Source: Malacoraja senta
Taxonomy: Eukaryota
DNA: 64,000 nt
Assembly: GCA_038087875.1 (NCBI GenBank)
Contig: CM075992.1
Coordinates: 2,914,001-2,978,000 of the forward strand
Reading direction: 5' to 3'
Part shown: positions 1,217-63,921 of the stretch, in pieces
Layout of the letters: each line of letters starts with the position of its first letter
Numbering within the stretch: position 1 is the stretch's first letter
Notes under the pieces: model-generated
Databases searched by the model: none
Seen by the model: only the letters and a program-made list of their open reading frames with translations
Told to the model about the DNA's origin: nothing
Made by a program: the position numbers and the translations under genes

Positions 1217-1306
1217 TTTTGCAATTTTAACAAAGTGGCTGAGAACGTCAACTCTTTTTTTAAGCATCTGTTTGGTGAGAATTTCTCTGACCACCCAGAA
1301 ACTAAC
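1217..1306 (-). CDS. RALGPS-like coding exon 5
   Basis: 90 nt, [30 protein letters not shown], gcag/gtaagt. Confidence 0.92.
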
Positions 1307-4300
1307 CTGCAAAGAGAGAATCACCAGTTTATGCTCATCCTTCATTCTTTTATCTCATTCCAAGTGCTTTGCAGAGCAATTTTTTTACAAATGTATAAAG
1401 CTGACTACTTTAGCCAAGACCTTACAAATATTTAATATTGCTGGTGAATTTCTTCTAATGCAACAGCCAAAATTCTTAACCGAATAGAACGACTTCAAAG
1501 ATTAGGCTTTCTTCCACTAATTAAACAGATTTCACTTTTTTATTGAGAACAAACAAAAACAAGATGTACATTTGTCAGTTTTCAGTACATGAAAGTATCA
1601 TGGTAAGAAGCAAAGGCTCAAGCTGAGGGCATGTATTTCTCCTAACAAGGGTTTAGAGACAACATTGGCGAAGTGAACAGAGGGTTAAAATGACTTGTCA
1701 CGGCCTCAGCTATCCAGGTCAGTTTCTAACCCCCTATAGTGTCTGCGTGTAGCTCCTACATTTTCCGTCACCATGTGGGCTTCCCAGGTGCTCAGTTTTC
1801 TCCCACAACATGAAGATGGGCTGGTAGGTACATTAACTTGCCATTCTAAATTACCCTTAGTGGAGGTGGCTGGTGGAAAAATCAGTGAAGTGTTTATGGG
1901 CACAAGAGAGAACAGATTACAAAATTGATGGGATTGCTCCAGAAGCCACCATAGATGAAAATATTTTGGTCAAGTTTATGTTGAACTTCGGCGTTGCGAC
2001 CTGACTTCGGAGCCTCGGAGGCTCGGCCGCGGGCCAGTGGACGACATCATCGTCGGGAGCTCGCAGGTCACAGGTTGGTGACCTGTTTTTCCGGAGCTCC
2101 CGCAACAACAGCTTTGTCCGCTGGACTGGAGGGCGGCAGCTTCGACCGCCCTGGGCCGCGGAGTTTGAACTGGCCCGTTCGCGGAGCTCGGATTCAGCCG
2201 CGGGACTTGCTTACCATCACCCAGCGGGGTCACAACATCGGAGGCCTGGATCGCCTCAGCGCAGAGGGAGAGCAAGGAGGGAAGAGACAAGGACATTGGG
2301 ACTTTTGCCTTCCATCACAGTGAGGAGATGCCTGGTGGACTCACTGTGGTGGATGTTAAATCTGTGATCATTGTGTGTTTTGTTATTTATTCTATGTTAT
2401 GACTGCAGGCTAAACCATTTCGTTGTACTGAAAAGTGCAATGACAATAAAATTGAATCTGAATCTGAAATGAATGTGAATAAACATTTCAATTATGCACT
2501 GGATGAATAAACCAATTTGATCCACATATTGTAGCCTACCTTTTGCGATCATGACCTTGTATATTACTTGACCCTACCTGGTTAAATCTCCGGGTAAAAG
2601 CTACTACATTAGGAGCCAACGCATGCTTCCCCCTCTTGTTCCATGCACAACCAGACAGTTCCTGTTGGAGGGGAAAAAAAAGATTTAAATCCAATACAAG
2701 TAGAAGATTAATTCTGAAAGGAGTCCAGATTTAAATGGTTTATTTACAAAATATTATTTTGCATTCCTGGCAAAAAGGCCTTTTACTTAATACAACAATT
2801 CCTATCCCCATATGCAAGCCACATGTGGAATAGTGCGCGCAAAATGAATTACCTCTTTATCAACACACATTATCCAGATTTGGCTGTTCCTTCTTTATCA
2901 TTGGTCAAAGTGAGGAAGCCCTCAACCCAGCAGAACTATGGAAGTACCATGATGTAGACCATATCAAAGTGCTGGGGCACTACCACCATCCCAAGAACAA
3001 CTCGCATGGCAGAACATTTGTTTTTTGTAAAAGACAATTAAAAATCTGCCTGGAATTTACACCAGACAAACTGCCATTTGCACAACTCAAGCATCATAAG
3101 GCTGGGCGGCTAATAGTCAAGAAGAAATATAACACCAGCAAGTATGGATGGAATTTCCCCTTTACCCCACTCCGTCCAGAAACTAGACACCATATTCAAC
3201 ATGTTACAGGTAGACTTGCATCTCTATATTGCTTTCCTAAACTCAGGTTATGCCAAAGCACTCTATAGCTAGTGAAGTGCTATAGAAGTGCAGTCAATAT
3301 TGTAATACAGCAAATAAATGGAGGCAATGTGTTATTTGTAGTAAAGATAATGAACCAGATAACCTGCTTGTCATGATGTTTATCAGAGAAATGCTAGCCA
3401 GGATACAGAGAAGAACACTCTCTCTTGCTGTTTAAAATAGCAGTACAATTTTATTTTCTGCCTTCAATACCTTTTCTGAAAATCTATCCCTCCAACACTA
3501 CAGCATATCTATCTATATCTAGACTGATAGCTTGAATGTTGTGCTGGAGAGTCAGGAATGGGACTTGACCCATGAGTATAGACTAATAAGTGAGACTGGC
3601 ACCGAAGACCCATGATAATTGTGGAGCAGGATGAAAGATGGAGAGACTGTGAAAGTCTTCATTAAAGAAAAGGTATCTGAATGTAGATCAAGTAGTTCAA
3701 ATGCACATAGAACTGGTCAAAGAATCTGTATAAATCAAAGGAGGTCCACCACCTTTACTACACTCACAACCACCAACCCCTACCATTCTTCCCAAGCCTC
3801 CAAACATCAACCCAGGAAAGGTATTTATTCATCCTTTATGGAGCGAGCATAATCTAGGGATCAAATTTAGTGAATGATTGAGACACTGACCAAGACAAGT
3901 CCACAATCTCGGCAGTAAACTGACTTTTAAAATGTGTTCTGTTTCTCCTCTACTATTGCCCAAGAGATTCCCAAAAACTAAGCATTCTGAGACATATTTT
4001 AAACTAATTTCCAGTTTTTGCTATTCAGCACCAGGATTTCCAGAACAGGATTTAAACATCAACATCTGGATTGGCAGCTGACCATCACTTAACTGTGGTT
4101 CAAGGGCCTAACACTGCTTTATAGGCTGCTATAAAAACAAGATATCAAGTTCAATCTAAAAACATTGCTTATGAATAGAAATGCAGGCGAGATTAAATGG
4201 TGCAGCAGCAGCAAATTTGTAAAGTTAGGTGCTCCGAACTACATCTGCTAAACCCAGCGGAAAGCGAGGACTATTTTACCAGGGCTGTTATCAATTCATT

Positions 4301-7300
4301 ATTATTTCTTCTTCTTAAGCATTTCCTCAGAATTAAGAATAACATATTTTAGTTAGTTCTGTGGGCTCCGAGGTGGCTGATGAGGGTAATTGAGCACCAC
4401 AAGAGGAGCAGGAGGTGTTTGTTTGGGTGGGCGCATAGGCAAAAGGTTTACCAGCATAACACATCAGTGTGACTGAACAAAATCCAGAGGTGGAATTAAT
4501 TTTTTTCGCCATCTCAAGGTAGTTGTTGCAAATGCAAGAAGTGGGAAGAACCATGGCCTGTTAGTAACTAGCTCATCTTCTCTGGAGTACCTCAAGATTG
4601 AAGATTACTTGTTTCCATTATAATTCAATTGGTCTTAACCGGCACATCAGAACCAATGTGGAATCGGCAGATTCTGCTATGGATGGGACATGAGGTGTGT
4701 GATAGGAGGTTGGATGGATTTATGGGAAGAGGAGCAGAGTCACAGGATATATTTATGTAAGCAAGAATCAGGATATATTTATGTAAGCAAGAATCAGCCT
4801 CCAGACTACTTTGAAATTGCAAGGTGCAAATGAGCAACAAAGGCATTAGCTATTAGAAAACACCAATATTATTACACAGCTGAGTAGCACTCGACACAAA
4901 TCATCGTATTTATCAAGACAACGATCAGTTCTTCATCAGATACTCATGATACACACTCAACATTGGGACTGAGCAATGTGACATGACCATGAGATATTAA
5001 CCAATGTTAAAAATGTTAACCAAAATGCTCAGGGAACAAATGTGCAAGCAGCACAGTGGTACAACAAGTAGAGCTATTGCCTCACAACTCCAGCAACCCA
5101 GTTAAGTCCTAACCTCACATGCGGTCTGCGTGGAGTATGCAAGTTCTCCCTGGCTACATGACTTCTTCCAAATGCTCTGGTTTCCTCCAAAATCCCCAAA
5201 ATGTGCAGGTCAGTAGGTTCATTGATCATCAATGGAGTGATAGATTATAAAAGGGTGTAGGAGTTGATTCCACTCCTCCAAAGAAAAAGGCCAGCAATAG
5301 TCAGAGAAACTCGGGAGTCTGAAATGTCATGTCACCAGCCTTTTTCATTATTTTTCTCTTTCTGCCAAAAACATTTGAATGACATTTCAGACTCCCGAGT
5401 TTCTCTGACTATTGCATCCAGCTATTCCCCAATTTAAAAGTACTCTTTGAATGATAAAAAGGATAAAACGATGGATTATCTCACATTTGTGTGCATTGCA
5501 ATTCATTTGCTTCAATTTTACCCATTTGATTACAGAATCTCAGAGGCTATTCATAACATCGTCATGCTGCTTTTGTGGAGAACATTTCGATATTTAGACC
5601 CATTTCCCTCCTCCTTCAAATAATTTTCCCTTGAGCATTCCACAGATGGGCACCAAATCCTGGCCTTGCCAAAAATGCTCACAGACCAATTAAATTTAAA
5701 AGCTGTAGCACCTGCAGTGGATCACCACCAATACATCTTTCCAACACTCTGGACAATGGTCACTCCGCCCTTCCCCGATGTGGAACTTACCTCGGGCTGG
5801 ATGGACTTGAAGACAGTAATGTCCAGCAATGTGATCTGACTCTGAAACAGTAAAAGAGAATCAGGCATCGCCACAGGCAAAACACATGAAATGTGGAACA
5901 CAAACAGAAGTCTTTTACAAATCAGCAAAGCTTCCAAACACATCCGCAAGAAACAACCCAGCTAATTCCACGTTATACCAGCAGTAGCATTTTACAACCA
6001 GATGGATACCATGCCAGTGCACTACAAATTGCTACTTCCTCTCCTCATTAAACACCAAGCCTCTCGAAATTCTGCCCCGAGCAAAAGGCTGTAAAAGTAC
6101 AGAACCAAGCTACTTTTCTTGGAATCTGCACGACTCCATCCTTTTGTTTTATCCTGCCTTCATTTCCCAGCCCCCTTTCCCAATTCTCATTTTTCTACAC
6201 TCATTAGCCACACAATTCCTCCCCAGGTCATTCCAGAAAACAGTTTGCAACCCAGTTTGCAACTCAGAAATACAGCTGTGAATAAAGGTCCCATAGTGCT
6301 GAACATGCCTGCAGCCCTATATCAATTAATAAATCTCTCCCGCCAGATTCCCAAATGCTCATTCATTTATACAGGCCGTACTCAAGTCAGACATTCTGAA
6401 AAGTCCCGACCCAAAACCTCACCTATCCATGTTCTCCAGGGACACTGCCTGACCTGCTGAGTTACTTCAGCACTTTGTGTCTTTTTTCAGACATTCATAA
6501 GCCTGAGAGGTCAATAGACAATAGACAATAGGTGCAGGAGTAGGCAATTCGGCCCTTCGAGCCAGCACCGCCATTCAATGGCTGATCATCCCCAATCAGT
6601 ACCCCGTTCCTGCCTTCTCCCCATATCCCCTGACTCCGCTATTTTTAAGAGCCCTATCTAGCTCTCTCTTGAAAGCATCCAGAGAACCTGCCTCCACCAC
6701 CCTCTGAGGCAGAGAATTCCACAGACTCACCACTCTGTGAGAAAAAGGTCCTGCTCAGCCAGATTACAGCTCCGACCCGTAACTTCGTCTGTCTATTTCC
6801 CTCCACAGACCCGATGAGTTCCTCCAGCGCTCCGTTTTTTGCTCAAGATTCCAGAATGTGCATTCTCTTGTATTTCCAGGATGTGTATTTTGTTTAGTTA
6901 AATAAGTTTATACAAAGGGAGATTGCTCTGCACTCAGTCTTGGAGAGAAACCCAGCCATTAAAATATCCACATCTTCCCATCCAGAAGGCACTCATCCTG
7001 CTCACGTACCCAGAACTGAGGGTCCATCCTTGACACAATGCATTGGATCTCTCCAGTCAGCACAGTGCTCTATACAACACAGAAATAACACCAGAAATGT
7101 ATCATCTCTGGGAGAGGGCCAAGTGACGGAAACAGAATTAATATAGAAGGATGCCAACTGGTTGGCATGGTGGACCAAAACATTGTCGTGTGACTATGAT
7201 TAAGTTTTATTTACATCTTGTCTCCAGTGACAATGTTAAAAGTACTATATGAATGGAAATAAGTTCAGTTTAGGAACTGAGAGATTAATCACTCATATTT

Positions 7301-8481
7301 GATATATTTCCCAACAATTCTCTGGGGAAATTTAACAAAAGCTCTTTGGATTCAGTTCTTTCAGTATCTCATTGGCACCAAACACACTGAAACACCCCAG
7401 ATCCAGCTCATTACGTTGGTTCTTCCTTCCCTCTCTCCCACAGTAACTTCTACTTACTGCAAACTGTTCTGGGGACACCTTGAGAACATCAAATACAACA
7501 GCATCGAAGCTCTTCCCAAGGTTCTGAGATCCATTTTCTATGGACGTCACGGATGGACTTCTCTGGAAATTTTAGGTTCAAAATACAGAAATTTAGCCAG
7601 CCGTGGGTGTACCACCCAACAATAGATACTGACTTTTGTCACAACACTTAGCATATTTCATCCACCCACACATACCAGTTTCATGAACAATTCTCCATAT
7701 TAACTTTTTTTTACAAATTGTCACTGTAATATAGGGAACATCGCAGCTAATTTGTGCAAAGGAATACAGTAATGTCGGGAGGCAATTTCAATATGTCCAT
7801 CTCACCATTCAATACAATCATGGCTGCTCTCTACCCCATATTATTTAACATTTGGTTAACAAAAAAATCCCTCAATCTCAAATTTAAAGTTAACAATTAA
7901 CAAATCTTATAGAAACATAAATAATTATTAAAGGATTAGATAGGCGAGATACAGGAAAAAATGTTCCCTATGTTGGGGGCGTCCAGAACCAGGGGTCACA
8001 GTGATAGGCCATTTAGGACTGAGATGAGGAAACACTTTGTCACCCAGAGAGTTGTGAATCTGTGGAATTCTCTACCACAGAAGGCAGTGGAGGCCAATTC
8101 ACTGGATGTTTTCAGGAGAGAGTTAGATTTAGCTCTTAGGGCTCCCATCCACCATGCATGGGACTTTGGTAGCGCTGTTCTAGCAGTTTCTAGATTATTG
8201 GATGTTATTTCATATTAATACTCCAACACAATTATTCACTATTTTAAAAAAAATGTTACAGTAGAATAAAATAATTTTTAGGGTACATGAGTGACGAGAT
8301 CCTTGTGGAGCAGAATTTAGTAAAAAGGGAGGAAGAAATTATAACTATGTACAACCAACTCTAAATCCATGTTCAAAGTTCAGTCTAAAATAAAAATCTT
8401 TCAGTTCAGTAACAAAGTACCTACATCTGGTCCAATATTTAGTTCTGTATCACTTGGCAAGTCTCTTGCAGGCGGCTCCAT
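1217..8481 (-). CDS. RALGPS-family Ral guanine nucleotide exchange factor (RasGEF/CDC25 domain N-terminal part); 5 coding exons, continues beyond left edge
   Basis: Exons 8425-8481, 7458-7562, 5791-5841, 2578-2661, 1217-1306, all phase 0 with AG/GT boundaries. Spliced peptide [129 protein letters not shown] matches RALGPS1/2 motifs (KS[FY][27 protein letters not shown]). Paralogue identity uncertain. Confidence 0.92.
1975..2468 (+). mobile_element. CpG-rich non-LTR retroelement 3' fragment (atgacaataaa + (gaatct)n tail)
   Basis: GC/CpG-rich block in an AT-rich intron ending in tgacaataaaattgaatctgaatctgaa. Family not identified. Confidence 0.55.
2578..2661 (-). CDS. RALGPS-like coding exon 4
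   Basis: 84 nt, [28 protein letters not shown], acag/gtaggg. Confidence 0.92.
5294..5415. repeat. perfect 37-bp inverted repeat with 48-nt spacer
   Basis: gcaatagtcagagaaactcgggagtctgaaatgtcat (5294-5330) and its exact reverse complement (5379-5415). Confidence 0.95.
5791..5841 (-). CDS. RALGPS-like coding exon 3
   Basis: 51 nt, [17 protein letters not shown], tcag/gtaagt. Confidence 0.92.
6512..6748 (-). mobile_element. CR1-type LINE 3' end
   Basis: (caataga)n tail plus the 3'UTR shared with the 55.8-56.4 kb copy. Confidence 0.85.
7458..7562 (-). CDS. RALGPS-like coding exon 2
   Basis: 105 nt, ...[19 protein letters not shown], ccag/gtaagt. Confidence 0.92.
7905..8142 (+). mobile_element. 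CR1-type LINE fragment
   Basis: SRTRGHS...[18 protein letters not shown]. Confidence 0.85.
8425..8481 (-). CDS. RALGPS-like coding exon 1 ([19 protein letters not shown]); exon with 5'UTR extends to 8515
   Basis: ttcag acceptor at 8516-8520, ATG at 8481, GTAGGT donor. Its 57 coding nt give the phase 0 needed for the next exon. Confidence 0.7.
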
Positions 8482-11540: not shown

Positions 11541-13026
11541 TTTTTTAATAAAAGAGAGGGATAGATAGGGTAGACACAGTCTAAACCTTTTTTTTCTCCC
11601 TTGGATGGAAAAAGCAAATACTAAATGGATACAAGGTGCTGGAGTAAATCAGCAGGTCTGGCAGCATCGATGGAGAATGTGGCTAGATGACATTTCGGGA
11701 CGAGATCCTTTAGTCTGAAAGTGATGGGAGCCTCGACGTTTTAAGAGAGAATAGGTATAATGGCAATAAAACAATTTTAGATAAAATCCTTGGGGAGGTT
11801 ATTGGAGGTAGGCAGGATATTAGCAGTGATTACATTTAACAGGGTTAGCTTATATATTTTGCACAACCCACACAGACATTTTTAATTTTGATTATTATCC
11901 AAGTCATCTTTGAGTGGAAGAAGATATAATAACAATGTGCAATTAATAAACATGATGGGACCTCAATACACTTCACCGGATCATTATCAGCAGAATTTCA
12001 TACAACCATATGAGGAAGATGGTGAAATACTAACTTGAAACATCATCTATTCATGTTCTTTGGAGATGCTGCCTATGTTACTACAGCATTTTGTTTCCTT
12101 TTGTGTATTAACCTGCAACAGCAGTTCCTTGTTTCTATAAATACTAGATTTAGTTTAGATGACATAGCTATAAGGTGAGAGGGGCAAAGGAAATGTGCAG
12201 GGCAGGGCATGTTTTTTTTATACAGCGTGTGGCGAGTGCCTGGAATGCATTGCTGAAATTGGTGGAGGCAGATACAATTGTCATTTTTAAGAGACTTTTG
12301 GATAAGCAGGGAATGGAGGGATATGGATTATGTGCAGACCGATAAGAGTTGGTCTTGTTATCATGTGTACAGATATTGGGCATTGAAGGACCTGTTCCTC
12401 TGTTGTATTCTATGTTCTATTAAGTATGTTCCTCTTTAATTTTAGGAGAAATATGATTTTGCATATCCATTGATGAAGCAGATGAAGGTGGATAGGTTCA
12501 GACACTGCTCTTGGATCGCCTACAGTAATATCCAAAGACGGGGATGATTGACTACCAGCAACCACATTATCTTCCCCTGTGCAAGGTATGACTCCAACAC
12601 TACTGATGTGTTTTGTCGTTTCATTTTTCGCTCTCGGCTGTTAAATGCTGTCTTGTGTCAAGTGTTGCCTTTCTGTTCTGTTGCAAGTTTACACACACTG
12701 ATTAATATGATGTGCATTTCTGCTTAATATGATGTGCATTTCTTTTCCATGCTAGAAAATGGATGTGGTTGCATTGGAGAGAGTGCAGAGGAGACCCACC
12801 AGATGTCTCCTGGATTGGATATCTTATGGGTAGAGTTTGGATAGGCTTGTAATCTCTGGGGCAAAGGAGACAGAGGGGGTGATTTGATAGAGGTATTACA
12901 AAGTTATGAGGCATCATTATCTCTCTAAATCAATAGGGTGTGTCCCTGTGTGCCTCTGACCGTGGGTACACAAAAATGCTGGAGAAACTCAGCGGGTGCA
13001 GCAGCATCTATGGAGCGAAGGAAATA

Positions 13027-13059
13027 GGTAACGTTTCGGGCCGAAACCCTTCTTCAGAC
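13027..13059 (-). ncRNA. putative minimal hammerhead ribozyme core in a Penelope terminal repeat (representative intact copy)
   Basis: GU-CUGAAGA-A-GGGU(UUCG)GCCC-GAAA-CGUU-ACC. Further copies at 44673-44705(-), 45856-45886(-), 16761-16793(+), 62312-62343(+, CUGAUGA). Confidence 0.6.
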
Positions 13060-13060
13060 C

Positions 13061-13662
13061 GTGTATGTGCTTCCTGTGTGCGCCTGCCTGTGTGTGTTTG
13101 TGCATGTGTGTCCCTGTGTGCCACTGTGCATGCCTGTGTGTCTGTCTGTGGATGTTTATGCCTGTGTGTGTGCGTGTCTGTCTGTGTGTTTGTGCATGTG
13201 TCCCTGTGTGCCACTGTGCACGCCTGTGTGTGTCTGTCTTTGTGCATGTGTCCCTGTGTGCCATTGTGCATGCCTGTGTGTGTGTGCTTGCCTGTGTGTG
13301 TGCTTGCCTGTGTGCGCCTGCCTGTGTGTGTTTGTGCATGTGTGTCTGTGTGCCACTGTGCATGCCTGTGTGTGTGCGTGCCTGTGTCTGTGGGTGTTTG
13401 TGCATGTGTATGCCTGTGTGTGTTTGTGCATGTGTCCCTTTGTGCCACTGTGCATGCCTGTGTGCCTGCCTGTGTGTGTGCGTGCCTGTGTGTGTCTGCC
13501 TGTGTGTGTTTGTGCATGTGTGCCACTGTGCGTGCCTGTGTGTGTCTGCCTGTGTGTGTTTGTGCATGTGTGTGCCACTGCATGCCTGTGCGTGTGTGTA
13601 TGCCTGTGTGCCACTGTACATGTATGTGCGTGCTTGTGTGTGTAAGCCAGTGTGTGTGTGCA
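13061..13662. repeat. complex (TG)-rich minisatellite
   Basis: Recurring units such as tgtgtgtttgtgcatgtg / ccactgtgcatgcctgtg. Confidence 0.95.
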
Positions 13663-13929
13663 CAGTTAGACATCATCAACTGCAATTCAGACTGGTGCCT
13701 GCAGCAAATGGAACTGAAACTGGCCTCTTCCCTGTCACATGACACGGGGGAGGTGGGGAAGTGAGCTGTGGGAGGAGGGGGGAGAGAGATAAGATCAGAC
13801 ATGGTTTCACCAGCGAGAACAGTGCTTTGAGTACATAGCTGGCTCTGTGTGTGTTGGCGAGGGCTAGTTTTTATAATCACAAGCGCATCCCCTCTGCTCT
13901 TTGCACAAAGCTCTGTCAGTGGAGTGAGG

Positions 13930-13950
13930 ATGATCTGTCCTCAGAGGAAG
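13930..13950 (+). CDS. ST6GALNAC3-like coding exon 1 (cytoplasmic tail MICPQRK)
   Basis: aggATGa start and AAG/gtaaat donor, phase 0. A short first exon fits the family. Confidence 0.65.
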
Positions 13951-16900
13951 GTAAATGCTTTTTTTTTTCCCTTCTCTCCCTTTTCTATATTCAGCTGGAA
14001 TCAGAGAAAGGGCAACGGGGCAGGCAAGGATGATTTGCATGTATCTCTGTATCTCTGTGCTGCCGTTGCATCCATTACATTTAAAACATGGTGCTATTTC
14101 TCAAGCTGGCGGCATCCTGCCCATCCTTCCAGTTATGCCTGTCAACCCGCTGAAGCCAAGGATGAGGGGAAAAAAACGGTAGCTACTAATAAAGAAAATG
14201 ATTAGTTTATGTGCAATAGCAAACATGCCTTCATACACACCAAGTCCTGATCCCCTTTCACTCCTGACTTGCACTGTATCCTGGTTTTAAAATGTACATC
14301 CTTGTTTCCAAAGCCTTCCATTGTCTTGTTTCTCCCTGCCTCTGTAACCTCCTGCAGCTCCGTAACCCACTGCCTTCCCTTTGCTGGTGCGTTTGTGGCC
14401 TCTTGCTCGTCCCTGAATTCATTTGATCCACCACTGGTGGCAGTACTATTATTTATCACGTCCGGCAGCTCACAAAATTTACCCCCTCAACCTTTCTCTC
14501 CCCCCCTTTCTCTCCCCCCCCCCTTTCTCTCCCCCCTCTTTCTCTCCCCCCCCTTTCTCTCCCCCCCCCCTTTCTCTCCCCCCCCCTTTCTCTCCCCCCC
14601 CTTTCTCTCCCCCCCCCCTTTCTCTCCCCCCCTTTCTCTCCCCCCCCTTTCTCTCCCCCCCCCCCTTTCTCCCCCCCCCCTTTCTCTCCCCCCCCCTTTC
14701 TCTCCCCCCCCTTTCTCTCCCCCCCCCTTTCTCTCCCCCCCCTTTCTCTCCCCCCCCTTTCTCTCCCCCCCCCTTTCTCTCCCCCCCCCTTTCTCTCCCC
14801 CCCCCTTTCTCTCCCCCCCCTTTCTCTCCCCCCCCCTTTCTCTCCCCCCCCCTTTCTCTCCCCCCCCCTTTCTCCCCCCCCCCTTTCTCCCCCCCCCCTT
14901 TCTCTCCCCCCCTTTCTCTCCCCCCCCTTTCTCTCCCCCCCCTTTCTCTCCCCCCCCCCTTTCTCTCCCCCCCCTTTCTCTCCCCCCCCTTTCTCTCCCC
15001 CCCCTTTCTCTCCCCCCCTTCTCTCCCCCCCTTCTCTCCCCCCCTTCTCTCCCCCCCTTCTCTCCCCCCCCTTTCTCTCCCCCCCCTTTCTCTCCCCCCC
15101 TTTCTCTCCCCCCCTTTCTCTCCCCCCCTTTCTCTCCCCCCCCTTTCTCTCCCCCCCCTTTCTCTCCCCCCCCTTTCTCTCCCCCCCTTTCTCTCCCCCC
15201 CTTTCTCTCCCCCCCCTTTCTCTCCCCCCCCTTCTCTGCCCCCCTTTCTCTCCCCCCCTTTCTCTCCCTCTCCTCCCCCCCCTCTCCTCCCCCCCCTCCC
15301 TCTCTCCCTCTCTCCCTAATTCTCTCTTAAAATCTTCTCGCCGATCTTTGCGTCAAAATCTGTTTAATAGTGTTCCTGCTATCAGGAGTTCCTGACTATG
15401 AGTGATGAGCTTTGTTGCTGCATGAAATCAAAAGCTCTCGCTGTTATCAGTGCGTTTATATCACAAAGCCAGGCGAAAATGAAGGATCTCGACCCGAAAT
15501 GTCACCCATTCCTTTTCTCCAGAGATTCTGTCTGACCCGCCGAGTTACTTCAGATTTTTTGTGTCGATCTTTGATTTAAACCTGCATCTGCAGTTCCTTC
15601 AGCAACGGTTCAGGAGGTCTTCGACTGGTCTTCTACATATTTTCAGAAATGTTCTTGTATCTGTAAAGCTACGCCTTTTAATCGGTCATCACCCTTATTC
15701 ACTATCGTACGGTACAGAGCAAGGCCATAGGACAAGAACAGGCCACTCAGCCCCATATATTTGTGCTATCATTCAATTCAATGATGATGATTCAACAATA
15801 CTTTTCTGCCATTGGTACTTAGGTATAGTGAAATTCTTTGTTTTGTATACAATGCACAAAGTGCACAAAAGAGTTGCCAAGTTTCTGGTGCCGACAAAGT
15901 TACAAAAGTACTCGAGTTACAAGAGTCACATTAGTCCCTCCTCGTTCTTGGCGACACCCTTTCTTCCGCTTCCCTCCCCCCCCCCACACACCGACAAGGT
16001 CCCTCTTAGATCTCCACGGTCCCCACCCCACCAGGTCCCTCTAAGTTCTCCCGCGGCACGGCCCCTTCTAGACCCGACGGACTGCACAGCCATGTGTCGT
16101 CACCAACAGTCACGTCCCTCCAGAAATGCCCCCCTACAGGGTAACACTCCCTCGGCACTGTCCTCTGACAGGAATAGCAATCCCTTGACAGTGCAGCCCT
16201 TACCAGGACCACTCCCCTGGTGATAGCATACCTCAGTACTGCCCCTCTGACAGTGCGGCACTCCCTCAGTACTCCTGCTTTCTGTGCTATCTTCTTGAGT
16301 TACTCCAGCATTTTGTGTCTATCTTCGGTTTAAAGCAGCATCTGCAGTTCCTTCATGCACATCAAATTAATTTTGTTTCTCCCAGCGGAATGTTCTCCTG
16401 GCCATGGGTGTGATCGGAGGTGTGTCCTTCCTTGTTGCTGTGGTCCACTACATCCACCAGTCTCCCTATCCCGTTATGCTCTCGCAGCTGGCTGGCAGAC
16501 CGGCCATTGACGGCCTGAGCCATTTCTTCGGTGCTTTTGGTCAGAACGGCAAGTTGCTGCGAGGCTACGTCAGCCTCCCGGAACAGCAGGTGAGTCCGTG
16601 AATCACCTTGGACAGGCGCGTGGCTTCGAATGATATGGGCCAAACACAGGCAGATGGGACATCTTGGTCGGCAGAGTTGAGTTGGGCCGAAGAGCTTGTT
16701 TCCGTGCTGTCCACACTATGAACACACTGTCCACACTGCTGCTGATACCTCGCCGAGCAGGTCTGAAGAAGGGTCTCGACCCGAAACATCACCCATTTCT
16801 TCTCTCCAAAGATCCTGTCTGTCCCGCTGAGTTACACTAGCTCAGGAGTTCCCAACCTTTTTCGTCCCGTTTACCCCAGGCAACTTTAATAGCACATAAC

Positions 16901-19247
16901 AATGTTATTTCACTTATTTATGAACAACTAATGATGAACAGATACCGATATACCAGAACCAAACACAGTCAGTCAATGAGAAAAAAATATGTACAAATCC
17001 ACAGTCAACAAATTAGCCCCCCTGGGAAGGCAAAATTGCCCCCTGGGATCGTATCCCATCCGTTTAAGGTGACGGGGAAAAGATTTCATAAGAATCCAAG
17101 GGGTGACTTTTTCACACAAAGGATGGTGGGTGTATGGAACAAGCTGCTGGAGGAGGTAGTTGAAGCAGGGACTATCCCAACATTTAAGAAACAGTTAGAC
17201 AGGTACATGGGGTAGTGTAGGAAACTGCAGATGCTGGTTTAAATTGAAGAAAATGCTGGAGTAACTCAGCGGACAGGCAGCATCTCTGGAGAGAGGGAAT
17301 GGGTGACGTTTCGGATGGAGACTTCAGATAGGTACATGGATAGGACAGGTTTGGAGGGTTATGGACCAAACGTGGGTAGGTGGGACTAGAGTAGATGGAA
17401 CATGTCGGGAGACTGTATCACTCTACGACTCTATGTTCTCTCCCTGTCTCCAGCCTCTGGACCTCGCCTGTCAACAGTGCAGCATCATCTCCAGTTCTGG
17501 GCAGATGTTGGGCATGAAGCTGGGAGCTGAGATCGACCAGTCGGAATGTGTGTGGAGGATGAACAACGCTCCAACGGAGGGGTTTGAGTCTGACGTGGGC
17601 AGCAAGACCACGGTGCGAGTGGTGTCCCACACCAGCACCCCGCTGCTGCTCCGCCAAAGAGCTTTCCTCTCCGGTCTCAACAGCTCCTTCCACGTCTTCT
17701 GGGGCCCGCAGCGCAACATGCGGCGCGACGGCAAGGGGATCATCTACAACATGCTCCGCACCGTCCACAGTCACTTCCCCGCCGCCAAGATCTACACCCT
17801 GACAGAGGAACAGATGAGGCTCTGCGATATCGCCTTCAAGAGAGAGACAGGGAAAGACAGGTAGGGAGAGCAAGACTCCACAGTTCCCTGCAACTGACGG
17901 TAAAACAGAACCGTATCACCGCACTGACAGAGGAGACACTAACTCCTAGAACAGGGGTGGGGAACCTTTCCATGTTGGAATGCTGCATTGTTAGCTGTAA
18001 TCTAATAAGGCCGCATCCAAGAAACTTCAATTAGATATACTTCAAAATGTACATTATTTTGTAAAAATCTAACTACTATGTACTAACTTCAAGAAAATGA
18101 AAAAAAAAATGGTTAATTTTAAAGTTAACTAACCTTTTAATGACTTTGTTGTGACTGCTTTCTCGAGTCTCGGGTTACATTAGAACTAAATCATGAGCAA
18201 ACAGGTGTTAAAATAGCCCTCATGACTTACTAATAAGATGAGGCTGAGTTTCTCCAGCATTTTTGTGTACCTTTGATTTTCCAGCATCTGCAGTTCCTTC
18301 TTTAACACTCATGACTTACTAATGTTTTAATTGTGGCCGTCAGTCGGGGAGGATTATTTCGTTGAATCTTCTTTTACTCTTTGGTATTTTAAATACGTTC
18401 ATTATAAGATTAAAATAAAAATAATAAAAGACGAACAAAAACATCTTAATAAAATAGAAATAAAAGGATTTGTTCTACAAAACTTGGATTCATTCAAAAG
18501 GCCGCACTTAATGGCCTAGAAGGCCGCAGGTTCCCCACCCCTGTCCTAGAACGTAGACACACAATGCTGGAGTAACGTCAACCATTCCTCCTCTCCAGAG
18601 ATGCTGTCTGTCCCGCTGAGTTACTCCAGCATTTTGTGTCTACCTTCTATCCATGTTCATTGGCTTCCATCTTCCAGTCCCGCCTCAAGACCCATCTCTT
18701 CACCTCTGCATACCCTTAGTCCCCATGTTCCCCTCCCCTTTGCATCTCTGTCTTATTGTTTATTCTTGACTCTCAATGTAAAGCGACTTTGAGTCCTGAA
18801 AAGCGCTATATAAATAAAATGTATTATTATTAGTATTATTGGCTATATTTAAGAGGGAGTTAGATGCCCTTCTGGCTAAAGGGATCAGGGGGTATGGAGA
18901 GAAAGCAGGTACAGGATACTGAGTTGGATGATCAGCCATGATCATATTGAATGGCGATGCAGGCTCGAAGGGCCGAATGGCCTACTCCACCTATTTTCTA
19001 TGTTTCTATCTACCCGTCTAACTGTTTCTTAAACGTTGCGATTGTCTCTGCCTCAACTACCTCCTCTGGCAGCAAGGTGTTGTCTGTCAGAGTTCCCCTG
19101 ACTTGCTCCCCAATGTTAACCTTGTTCTCTGTGTTGCAGGGTGTTGTCTGGCTCGTATCTCAGCACTGGCTGGTTCACTTTCATCCTGGCGATGGAGGCT
19201 TGCAGCAACATTCACGTCTACGGAATGATCAACGACACTTACTGCAG
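13930..19247 (+). CDS. alpha-N-acetylgalactosaminide alpha-2,6-sialyltransferase, ST6GALNAC3-like (GT29); 4 coding exons, last exon not in the assembled sequence
   Basis: Exons 13930-13950 (MICPQRK), 16386-16589 (TM anchor and stem), 17454-17860 (sialylmotif L: CSIISSSGQM...RMNNAPT...DVG...RVVSHTS), 19140-19247 (sialylmotif S: SGSYLSTGWFTFILAMEACSNIHVYGMINDTYC). Frame is continuous across AG/GT junctions. Confidence 0.93.
14490..15320. repeat. polypyrimidine minisatellite (C6-10 TTTCTCT)n
   Basis: ~830 bp almost pure C/T, 13-17 nt units. Confidence 0.97.
16386..16589 (+). CDS. ST6GALNAC3-like coding exon 2 (type II TM anchor, stem)
   Basis: RNVLLAMGVIGGVSFLVAVVHYIH...LRGYVSLPEQQ, cccag/gtgagt. 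Confidence 0.85.
17060..17435 (+). mobile_element. CR1-type 3' fragment with nested Penelope-derived cassette
   Basis: FFTQRMVGVWNKLLEEVVEAG. Insert ~17215-17325 is flanked by a duplicated aga(c/t)aggtacatgg. Confidence 0.75.
17454..17860 (+). CDS. ST6GALNAC3-like coding exon 3 (sialylmotif L)
   Basis: 407 nt, PLDLACQQC...FKRETGKDR. Confidence 0.95.
17952..18543. mobile_element. non-autonomous hAT (Charlie-like) DNA transposon / MITE
   Basis: 16-bp TIRs CAGGGGTGGGGAACCT / AGGTTCCCCACCCCTG. 8-bp TSD tcctagaa at 17944-17951 and 18544-18551. Contains a nested Penelope-derived insert with 16-bp TSD (18219-18234, 18308-18323). Confidence 0.9.
18838..19010 (+). mobile_element. CR1-type 3' end
   Basis: Near-identical to 56258-56430. 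Confidence 0.85.
19140..19247 (+). CDS. ST6GALNAC3-like coding exon 4 (sialylmotif S)
   Basis: 108 nt, VLSGSYLSTGWFTF...NDTYCR. Confidence 0.95.
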
Positions 19248-19359
19248 GTACCACAGAGGACAACCATTACCTCCCATGAATCACACCGCCCATCACTCCC
19301 TCCCTCAGCCCCACCACCTCTCCCAAGTGCGTCCCATTCACCCACCACCCTCTTTTTGT

Positions 19360-19620
19360 TTTGATTTAGGGAAAGGCCTTTCGGCCCGCCGACCAGCGAT
19401 CCCCGCACACTAGCACTATCCCACACACATACTAGGGACAATTTACATTTACCCCAAGCCAATTAGCCTACAAACCTGTGCGTCTTTGGAGTGTGGGAGG
19501 AAACCAGAGATCCTGGAGAAAACCCACGCAGGTCATGGGGAGAACGTACAGACAGCACCCGTAGTTAGGATCGAACACGGGTCCCTGGCGCTGTAAGGCA
19601 GCAACTCTACCGCTGCGGCC
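19360..19620 (-). mobile_element. tRNA-derived SINE (HE1/V-SINE type)
   Basis: Head gcagcggtagagttgctgccttacagcgcc...gttcgatcc (A/B box-like), central ggttttctcc...ttcctcccacactccaaagac, CR1-like tail. Confidence 0.8.
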
Positions 19621-19787
19621 CTTTGTTTAAAAATATACATTTAAAACTTGGCCGTGCACATTTCATTTAAAGTTTGTCCCTTTCACCTTCAAGCTATCCC
19701 CTCCAGAATCTGACATGCCCACCTTGGGATAAAGTTTCTGACGAAATGTGTGGGAAGGAACTGCAGATGCTGGTGTTCTAGGTCTCC

Positions 19788-20190
19788 CCCATTGTCAGAG
19801 TGAGGCTAAACGCAAATTGGAGGAACAGCATCTCATATTTCGCTTGGGCAGCTTACATCCCAGTGGTATTAATATTGATTTCTCTAACTTCAGGTAGCCC
19901 CGGCATTCCCTCTCTCTCTCTCTCTCTCTCTCTATCCCTCCCCCACCCAAGTCGCACCAGCTTCTCATTTTCAGCTTACAAACGGCTAACAGTGGGCCTG
20001 TTTCCTTTATCATCTTGCAAAAGATATTTGCATATCTTTTATTCATTGTTCTTTATCTCTCCACATAGTCTATATCTCTCGTTTCCTTACCCTAACCAGT
20101 CTGAAGAAGGGTCTCGATCCAAAACGTCACCCATTCCTTCTCTCCAGAGACGCTGCCTGTCCCGCTGAGTTACTCCAACCTTTTGTGCCT
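19788..20190 (+). mobile_element. Penelope-like element 3' end
   Basis: CQSEAKRKLEEQHLIFRLGSLHPSGINIDF, followed by ctgaagaagggtctcgatccaaaacgtc terminal repeat. Confidence 0.85.
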
Positions 20191-20813
20191 ATAAAGGTTG
20201 TGACTGTCTACCCTATCTGTGCCTCTTATTTTACATTATTTTATTAGGGGTCTCAACCCTGGTCTTTCCAAGAAAATAACCCAAGTTTGGCTGGTCCACA
20301 TATGTTTAGTAACATTATTGCAGGATATATACTGTAACTGGCACTCTGTATCTCCCTTGCGGTGCTGGCTCGAAGGGCTAAATGGCCTACTCCTGCACCT
20401 ATTGTCTATTGCCCTGTGCATTGAAGTGGTGCCATAGGATCTTGTAGGGTGGGAGAGGGGTAGGTATGATTGCAGAGAACAGCATGTGTGGCCCAGAAAT
20501 ACCAAACGTTTCCTTCGCTCCATAGATGCTGCTGCACCCGCTGAATTTCTCCAGCACTTTTGTCTACCTTATAAAATCTATTATTATTATTATTACCTTA
20601 TACCAAACGTTATCCTATTAGCTTGGGTTATGAATGAATGAATTAATAAGTTTACTGGCCAAGTATGTACACATACAAGGAATTTTCCTTGGTGCTCCGC
20701 TCGCAAGTAACAACACGACACACAGTAAACCATTAAGAATAAAACATTAAACCATTAAAATTAAAACATAGTTTAAACATGTGAATGAAATAAAATACCA
20801 GAGCAAAAGGAGG

Positions 20814-21013
20814 NNNNNNNNNNNNNNNNNNNNNNNNNNNNNNNNNNNNNNNNNNNNNNNNNNNNNNNNNNNNNNNNNNNNNNNNNNNNNNNNNNNNNNN
20901 NNNNNNNNNNNNNNNNNNNNNNNNNNNNNNNNNNNNNNNNNNNNNNNNNNNNNNNNNNNNNNNNNNNNNNNNNNNNNNNNNNNNNNNNNNNNNNNNNNNN
21001 NNNNNNNNNNNNN
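20814..21013. other. assembly gap (200 N)
   Basis: Exactly 200 Ns followed by a poly-G run. The round number suggests a placeholder scaffold gap of unknown true size. Confidence 0.99.
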
Positions 21014-21024
21014 GGGGGGGGGGG

Positions 21025-21168
21025 GGGAACCGAAGATTTCGGAGAAAAACCCATGTGGTCATGGGGAGAAGGTACAAACTCTGTACAGACAGCACCCGTA
21101 GTCGGGATGGAACCCGGGTCTCTGGCGCTGTAAGGCAGCAACTCTACCACTGCACCACCATGCCGCCC
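21025..21168 (-). mobile_element. HE1/V-SINE 5' part, truncated at the gap
   Basis: Same head as 19360-19620. Confidence 0.8.
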
Positions 21169-21198
21169 ATGATACTATGTGGTACTTACACAGTTCTA

Positions 21199-63921
<42,723 letters not shown>

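Follow-up and report, generated by a model that had tools for sequence, protein, structure and literature searches.

The described genes closest to the one considered here, RALGPS1 and RALGPS2, each contain a second gene. Human RALGPS1, at 9q33, hosts ANGPTL2, and human RALGPS2, at 1q25, hosts ANGPTL1; human ANGPTL6 is free-standing and is not known to have a RALGPS host. Both human pairs, ANGPTL1/RALGPS2 and ANGPTL2/RALGPS1, have been described as an antisense intronic gene with its host gene (PMC6371847). Among the loci examined in the present work, that of the teleost Cheilinus has angptl1a inside a gene for a 586-residue protein with RasGEF and PH domains. The subject of this analysis is a stretch of 64,000 nucleotides from a skate, Malacoraja senta (contig CM075992.1; hereafter the window). 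Its segment 1217-8481 most probably carries the start, five coding exons long, of a functional third paralogue of the RALGPS genes: the host of ANGPTL6, seen here only in elasmobranchs. The name R3 is used for this third RALGPS-type gene.

In the window R3 is read on the minus strand, from 8481 to 1217, as five open exons, all in phase 0 and with canonical GT-AG borders:

8425..8481, minus strand: R3 coding exon 1, 19 codons; ATG at 8481-8479, GT donor after the exon; N-terminus conserved with Pristis protein P0063
7458..7562, minus strand: R3 exon 2, 35 codons, RSPSV...; 95% DNA identity to Leucoraja L001:10950-11054
5791..5841, minus strand: R3 exon 3, 17 codons; the RasGEF domain begins here
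2578..2661, minus strand: R3 exon 4, 28 codons; GT-AG borders
1217..1306, minus strand: R3 exon 5, 30 codons; clade-typical 'ILTKQ..K.RV' where RALGPS1 and RALGPS2 have 'ILTAQTLKIRAE'

Joined, these exons specify 129 amino acids, comprising the N-terminus and, in exons 3-5, the start of the RasGEF domain. Exon 6 was not found in the remaining 1216 bases at the left edge of the window; therefore, the gene runs off that edge. Full-length RasGEF+PH proteins of three skates (Leucoraja, Amblyraja and Rhinoraja) show 92-94% identity to these 129 residues, and none matches them completely; such agreement is not that of a chance pattern of open reading frames. The ratio of nonsynonymous to synonymous substitution rates (dN/dS) over exons 2-5 is 0.27 against Leucoraja, 0.16 against Pristis and 0.21 against Heptranchias. 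The beginning of a real, selectively conserved gene is confirmed in the window. An earlier note on this DNA, made from the letters alone, had recognized a RALGPS gene with five exons in 7.3 kb, and the splice borders, the common phase and the skate proteins bear it out. The N-terminus it had quoted as unlike those of the known paralogues proves exact on re-reading; it differs from RALGPS1 (MYKRNGLMAS...) and from RALGPS2 (MDLLNGQS...), and matches that of Pristis R3 (MELTRDLSSDTEPNIGPERSPSV...).

The gene is found in other sharks and rays. Exon 5 alone, used as a query against 1.84 billion representative proteins, leads to RALGPS proteins; one of these, from the whale shark, has 'ILTKQ.LK.RV' as in the window, and not the 'ILTAQTLKIRAE' of RALGPS1 and RALGPS2. 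With the whale shark protein as query, a sharply separated top group appears that consists of elasmobranchs only (Rhincodon, Chiloscyllium, Heptranchias, Leucoraja, Scyliorhinus, Pristis and Heterodontus); cluster look-ups supply further members in Amblyraja, Rhinoraja, Hemiscyllium, Mustelus and S. torazame. Full-length RasGEF+PH orthologues thereby come from at least 10 elasmobranch species, across a very long divergence.

A maximum likelihood tree of 43 host proteins (11 R3, including that of the window, 18 RALGPS2, 13 RALGPS1 and an isopod outgroup) places R3 in a clade of its own, elasmobranchs only, with support of 100/100; within it the window sequence falls among the skates, again at 100/100. 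RALGPS2 forms a second clade (100/98), in which chimaera and elasmobranchs are sister to bony vertebrates. The RALGPS1 clade (98/98) holds bony vertebrates only, as does the RALGPS1 sample from which it was drawn. The stem branch of R3 is long (0.5), and R3 joins RALGPS2 with moderate support (90/75). An approximately unbiased (AU) test rejects the union of R3 with chondrichthyan RALGPS2 (p=0.004).

RALGPS2 is the nearest clade in the tree, and the two genes have much in common: a RasGEF domain, a PH domain at the C-terminus and no REM domain, an antisense intronic ANGPTL guest, and ~68-72% identity over the first 330 residues. R3 differs in lying outside the gnathostome RALGPS2 clade, in lacking the PPTPP motif, in evolving faster, in its N-terminus and in having a guest of the ANGPTL6 clade. 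With RALGPS1 it shares the domain plan and some residues of RALGPS1 type in the segment 76-160 (for example, 'SHF.KIAK'); identity is ~68%, RALGPS1 forms its separate 98/98 clade, and only RALGPS1 of the two has the SH3-binding motif.

The second line of evidence is the guest. In Leucoraja (L001), Pristis (L002) and Heptranchias (L005), R3 encloses an antisense gene of 494-495 amino acids with a Fibrinogen_C domain, and in all three the guest occupies the same R3 intron, after the exon for residues ~156/160-198/202. That preceding exon is also the one that flanks ANGPTL2 in the chimaera Callorhinchus: next to ANGPTL2 and antisense to it, that genome has a homologue of the exon for R3 residues 160-202. 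The intron used by the guest appears, then, to be the same in RALGPS1 and in R3. Full-length guest proteins were retrieved with exon 1 of the Pristis guest as query. In a tree of 44 proteins, eleven elasmobranch guests form one clade (100/99) with the ANGPTL6 proteins of coelacanth (Latimeria), lungfish (Protopterus), axolotl (Ambystoma) and sterlet (Acipenser). ANGPTL2 (100/99, with chimaera, sharks and rays included) and ANGPTL1 (100/99) are separate clades. AU tests reject placement of the guests with chondrichthyan ANGPTL2 (p about 0) or with all ANGPTL2 (p=0.002).

The neighbours of R3 tell the same story as the guest. Downstream of it lies a Brix+7tm_1 call (PPAN-P2RY11) in Leucoraja and Pristis, and a Brix+eIF3g+RRM call (PPAN-EIF3G) in Heptranchias. 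On the established map of human 19p13.2, the genes ANGPTL6, PPAN, P2RY11, EIF3G and DNMT1 are consecutive. The earlier note had suggested confirming the linkage in other shark and ray assemblies; at the loci examined here, PPAN-P2RY11 or EIF3G lies beside R3, as around human ANGPTL6. The R3 locus and the ANGPTL6 locus of bony vertebrates accordingly agree in the clade of the guest and in the neighbours PPAN-P2RY11, EIF3G and DNMT1. They differ in gene order with respect to DNMT1 (in skate, DNMT1 and PPAN are on opposite sides of R3) and in the host: ANGPTL6 is inside R3 in elasmobranchs but free-standing in sterlet, lungfish and axolotl. In the sterlet it has PPAN-P2RY11 on one side and an ICAM-like gene on the other, with no call of a host gene and no RALGPS-like relic exons in its 10-kb flanks. 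No host gene is called at the lungfish and axolotl loci either.

Nesting in three species, the guest clade, the synteny and the host-free ANGPTL6 of sterlet, lungfish and axolotl together support what the earlier note had proposed, that this is a RALGPS host gene of ANGPTL6; the antisense intronic guest of the orthologous skate, sawfish and sevengill shark loci belongs to the ANGPTL6 clade by tree (100/99) and by AU test. The note had added that the host was kept in cartilaginous fish and lost in mammals. The first part stands for elasmobranchs; ANGPTL6 with no host called was seen in sterlet, lungfish and axolotl, and a free-standing ANGPTL6 in human is established background.

R3 and its guest could also be viewed as a segmental duplication of RALGPS2/ANGPTL1 or of RALGPS1/ANGPTL2 that took place within cartilaginous fishes, in which case bony vertebrates would have lost nothing. 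R3 has been seen only in elasmobranchs, as such an event would predict, and a stem branch of 0.5 can distort placement in the tree. The AU test on the host (p=0.004), which rejects R3 with chondrichthyan RALGPS2, tells against such a duplication, however, as do the grouping of the guest with bony ANGPTL6 and its AU tests against ANGPTL2; the sterlet ANGPTL6 shares the PPAN-P2RY11 neighbour. A duplication of this kind is extremely improbable. The reading of R3 as an older, third paralogue has the further support of gene number.

In the sawfish Pristis pectinata, R3 is on CM019885, RALGPS2 (P0137) is on a 144.7-Mb record, and a RasGEF+PH gene of 581 aa on CM019877 encloses an ANGPTL2-clade gene (ANGPTL2b). 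As the three are on separate records, one genome contains three RALGPS-type genes. RALGPS2 is present beside R3 in Pristis, Heptranchias, Scyliorhinus and Rhinoraja. The earlier note had asked whether other RALGPS copies exist in the skate genome; in related species they do, RALGPS2 in four and the Pristis ANGPTL2b host as a third gene. The flanking exon of Callorhinchus differs from that animal's own RALGPS2; at 43 aa (L006), it is too short for assignment to RALGPS1 or RALGPS2 by identity. The call for a RasGEF gene at Callorhinchus milii L006:31179-33226 gives a product of 237 residues and stops just short of ANGPTL2; it may be a truncated RALGPS1 model, since the flanking exon corresponds to the one before the nest in R3. 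Within 10 kb of the nested genes at Pristis L003 and Cheilinus L007, no RALGPS1 or RALGPS2 host exons were found.

What the R3 protein may do is suggested by its domains. In three orthologues (P0061, P0177 and P0060), Pfam reports RasGEF at residues ~46-218 (E=3e-56 to 2e-55) and a C-terminal PH domain with E about 1e-7, above the curated cut-off, in a region outside the window; no match to a REM domain is reported in them. RALGPS1 and RALGPS2 have a proline-rich PxxP motif, P(P/T)TPP(V/S), just before the HRKSHSLG stretch. The motif is absent in 9/9 aligned R3 proteins, which instead read T(C/Y)LCL(T/M)..HRKW, with no proline. R3 is a member of the RALGPS family by descent that is without the family's SH3-binding motif. 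From its sequence, it would be a PH-targeted Ral GTPase exchange factor that has lost docking to SH3 adaptors and possibly has altered regulation; by analogy with the family, such a factor would still be recruited to membranes. At 94 positions the RasGEF region is invariant across RALGPS1, RALGPS2 and the isopod; every one of the eight full-length R3 proteins retains the residue at 61 of them, and seven or more do so at 72.

Several observations weigh against R3 as a functional third paralogue that hosts ANGPTL6, the first of them concerning RALGPS1. The AU test does not reject a clade of RALGPS1 with R3 (p=0.147), and the phylogeny that the earlier note had proposed as a check is therefore decisive on one side only: R3 is outside a RALGPS2 clade that holds chondrichthyans (p=0.004), while on the RALGPS1 side the 98/98 clade is made up of bony vertebrates. 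Chondrichthyan RALGPS1 proteins were sought with residues 76-160 of shark R3, a segment over which RALGPS1 outscores RALGPS2. This search retrieved more than 100 RALGPS1 proteins, every one of them from a bony vertebrate; none from chondrichthyans was among its 120 top-ranked matches, nor in three cluster look-ups. Taken with the AU results, this means that the host tree alone excludes a RALGPS2 copy made within cartilaginous fishes, and does not exclude a divergent RALGPS1. R3 could then be a fast-evolving elasmobranch orthologue of RALGPS1 in a new neighbourhood, with no third paralogue to explain, and several of the NCBI names are indeed 'RalGPS1-like'. Since the RALGPS1 union is unrejected, the separation of R3 from RALGPS1 draws on gene count, synteny and the guest tree, the host tree being insufficient by itself. 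The host of the ANGPTL2-clade gene on Pristis CM019877 is distinct from both R3 and RALGPS2; the chimaera has a RALGPS exon beside ANGPTL2 that is not its RALGPS2; the R3 guest is in the ANGPTL6 clade, not that of ANGPTL2, among the neighbours PPAN, P2RY11 and EIF3G; and the best tree joins R3 to RALGPS2 (90/75). Identity of R3 with RALGPS1 is, on this evidence, very unlikely.

A second group of adverse points bears on whether the third paralogue is functional. The RNA evidence is weak: a single run (X1) contributes low depth confined to exon-containing bins, and the RNA runs mainly match two high-copy repeats within R3 introns. Ten of the 94 invariant RasGEF-region positions are changed in nearly all R3 proteins; the activity could therefore have shifted. 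With 129 codons visible, minimal RNA support and a rate several times that of RALGPS2, the window copy might be taken for a decaying pseudogene or an artefact of annotation. Five open exons with canonical splice sites, dN/dS of 0.16-0.27 against three species, and full-length RasGEF+PH orthologues in at least ten elasmobranch species make the chance of this close to negligible.

The intron repeats themselves, at 6321-6917 and 7714-8310 (R3 introns 1 and 2), are of very high copy number; RNA and DNA runs from several organisms give summed contig depths of up to 1e5-1e7. Because contigs join the two on opposite strands (e.g. 6633 with 8143), the repeats look like inverted copies of a single element resembling a short interspersed element (SINE).

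The remaining adverse points concern distribution and the guest of the third paralogue. In Callorhinchus, no R3 was found among the top-ranked matches, and no ANGPTL6 was seen either. Nor was R3 among the top-ranked matches of either RALGPS search for Hemitrygon, Narcine, Cetorhinus, Stegostoma and Pristiophorus, all of which have an ANGPTL6-clade protein (P0191, P0193, P0197, P0200 and P0201); in some elasmobranchs R3 may be unannotated or lost. The guest's intron in the window genome is beyond the left edge, so that nesting there would follow by extrapolation from the three other elasmobranchs. The guest tree contains no mammalian ANGPTL6. By plain similarity to solved structures, finally, the fibrinogen domain of the guest is closer to human ANGPTL2 than to human ANGPTL6. 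Axolotl ANGPTL6 likewise scores higher to human ANGPTL2; best match to solved structures misplaces it in the same way, and was dropped as a classifier of guests in favour of the tree. The probable cause of the guest's higher ANGPTL2 score is that the human ANGPTL6 domain has evolved fast.

The origin of the three pairs can be considered next. Because R3/ANGPTL6 parallels RALGPS1/ANGPTL2 and RALGPS2/ANGPTL1, the host-guest unit would have been triplicated before the split between cartilaginous and bony vertebrates, as is consistent with the two rounds of whole-genome duplication (2R). In the bony vertebrates examined, the host would then have disappeared while the guest, ANGPTL6, stayed in place beside PPAN-P2RY11. 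A fuller scenario, towards which the evidence tips rather narrowly, is that the vertebrate ancestor, before 2R, already had RALGPS with an antisense ANGPTL in one intron as a single unit; that the guest stayed in that intron in all three surviving copies; that the host was deleted in bony vertebrates; and that the elasmobranch host changed in function through loss of SH3 docking.

The triplication might also precede jawed vertebrates and be due to local or chromosomal duplication other than the 2R rounds. The branching order of RALGPS1, RALGPS2 and R3 is unsettled (90/75; AU p=0.147), and the single lamprey ANGPTL sequence in the guest tree is weakly placed (90/85), both of which leave room for such an origin. 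The three host-guest pairs, on the other hand, are on three chromosomes, with neighbours that match human 1q25, 9q33-34 and 19p13.2 (in the third case PPAN, P2RY11, EIF3G, ICAM and DNMT1). This distribution is the pattern expected of 2R ohnologues on established paralogon maps. Duplication by some other route is unlikely.

A literature search turned up nothing under 'RALGPS3', no evolutionary paper that links ANGPTL6 with RALGPS and no paper that describes a third RALGPS. R3 is, all the same, already predicted in RefSeq, under misleading names: its members are inconsistently called 'RalGPS1-like' or 'RalGPS2-like' by NCBI. ANGPTL6-clade proteins of Heptranchias, Latimeria and Acipenser (P0195, P0203 and P0207) carry the name 'angiopoietin-related protein 2(-like)', which looks wrong. 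Such inconsistent names, for host and guest alike, could mislead orthology pipelines. The name of a Xenopus laevis protein (P0085, 'RalGPS1 isoform X1') also looks wrong; it shows 97.6% identity to the RalGPS2 of that species.

If R3 is what it most probably is, a two-gene RALGPS signalling family gains a third member, surviving so far in sharks and rays. Its loss elsewhere would account for the situation of ANGPTL6, which alone of the ANGPTL1/2/6 group is outside a RALGPS gene in humans. The locus would also be a clean case in nature of a nested gene and its host that were duplicated together long ago, after which only the host was lost; it would be useful for asking whether nested genes need their hosts for regulation.

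On the other side of R3, the window continues with the following features:

13930..19247, plus strand: ST6GALNAC-like sialyltransferase, upstream neighbour divergent from R3; its exon 17307-17861 matches Pfam Glyco_transf_29 with E=2e-19
20814..21013, no strand: 200 N, an assembly gap that separates the sialyltransferase from DNMT1
21274..54862, minus strand: DNMT1, approximate extent of recognized exons, with DNMT1-RFD, BAH and DNA_methylase matches; penultimate exon ~21396-21274

A compact Glyco_transf_29 gene has the same position and orientation upstream of R3 in Leucoraja (L001:1-5973) and Heptranchias (L005:1-3675). The last coding exon of DNMT1 (expected motif NAVPPP…) was not found in 12000-21400, on either side of the gap; for this reason the join to DNMT1, which the earlier note had remarked crosses a gap, is neither supported nor contradicted. 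The 200 N probably hide the 3' end of DNMT1. A long low-complexity tract (12937-15400) separates R3 from the sialyltransferase, with translations such as CVCV…/HTHT… and PPFSPPLSL… in all frames; GC skew in this region is extreme (-0.60 at 14001-16000) and GC content is raised (0.54).

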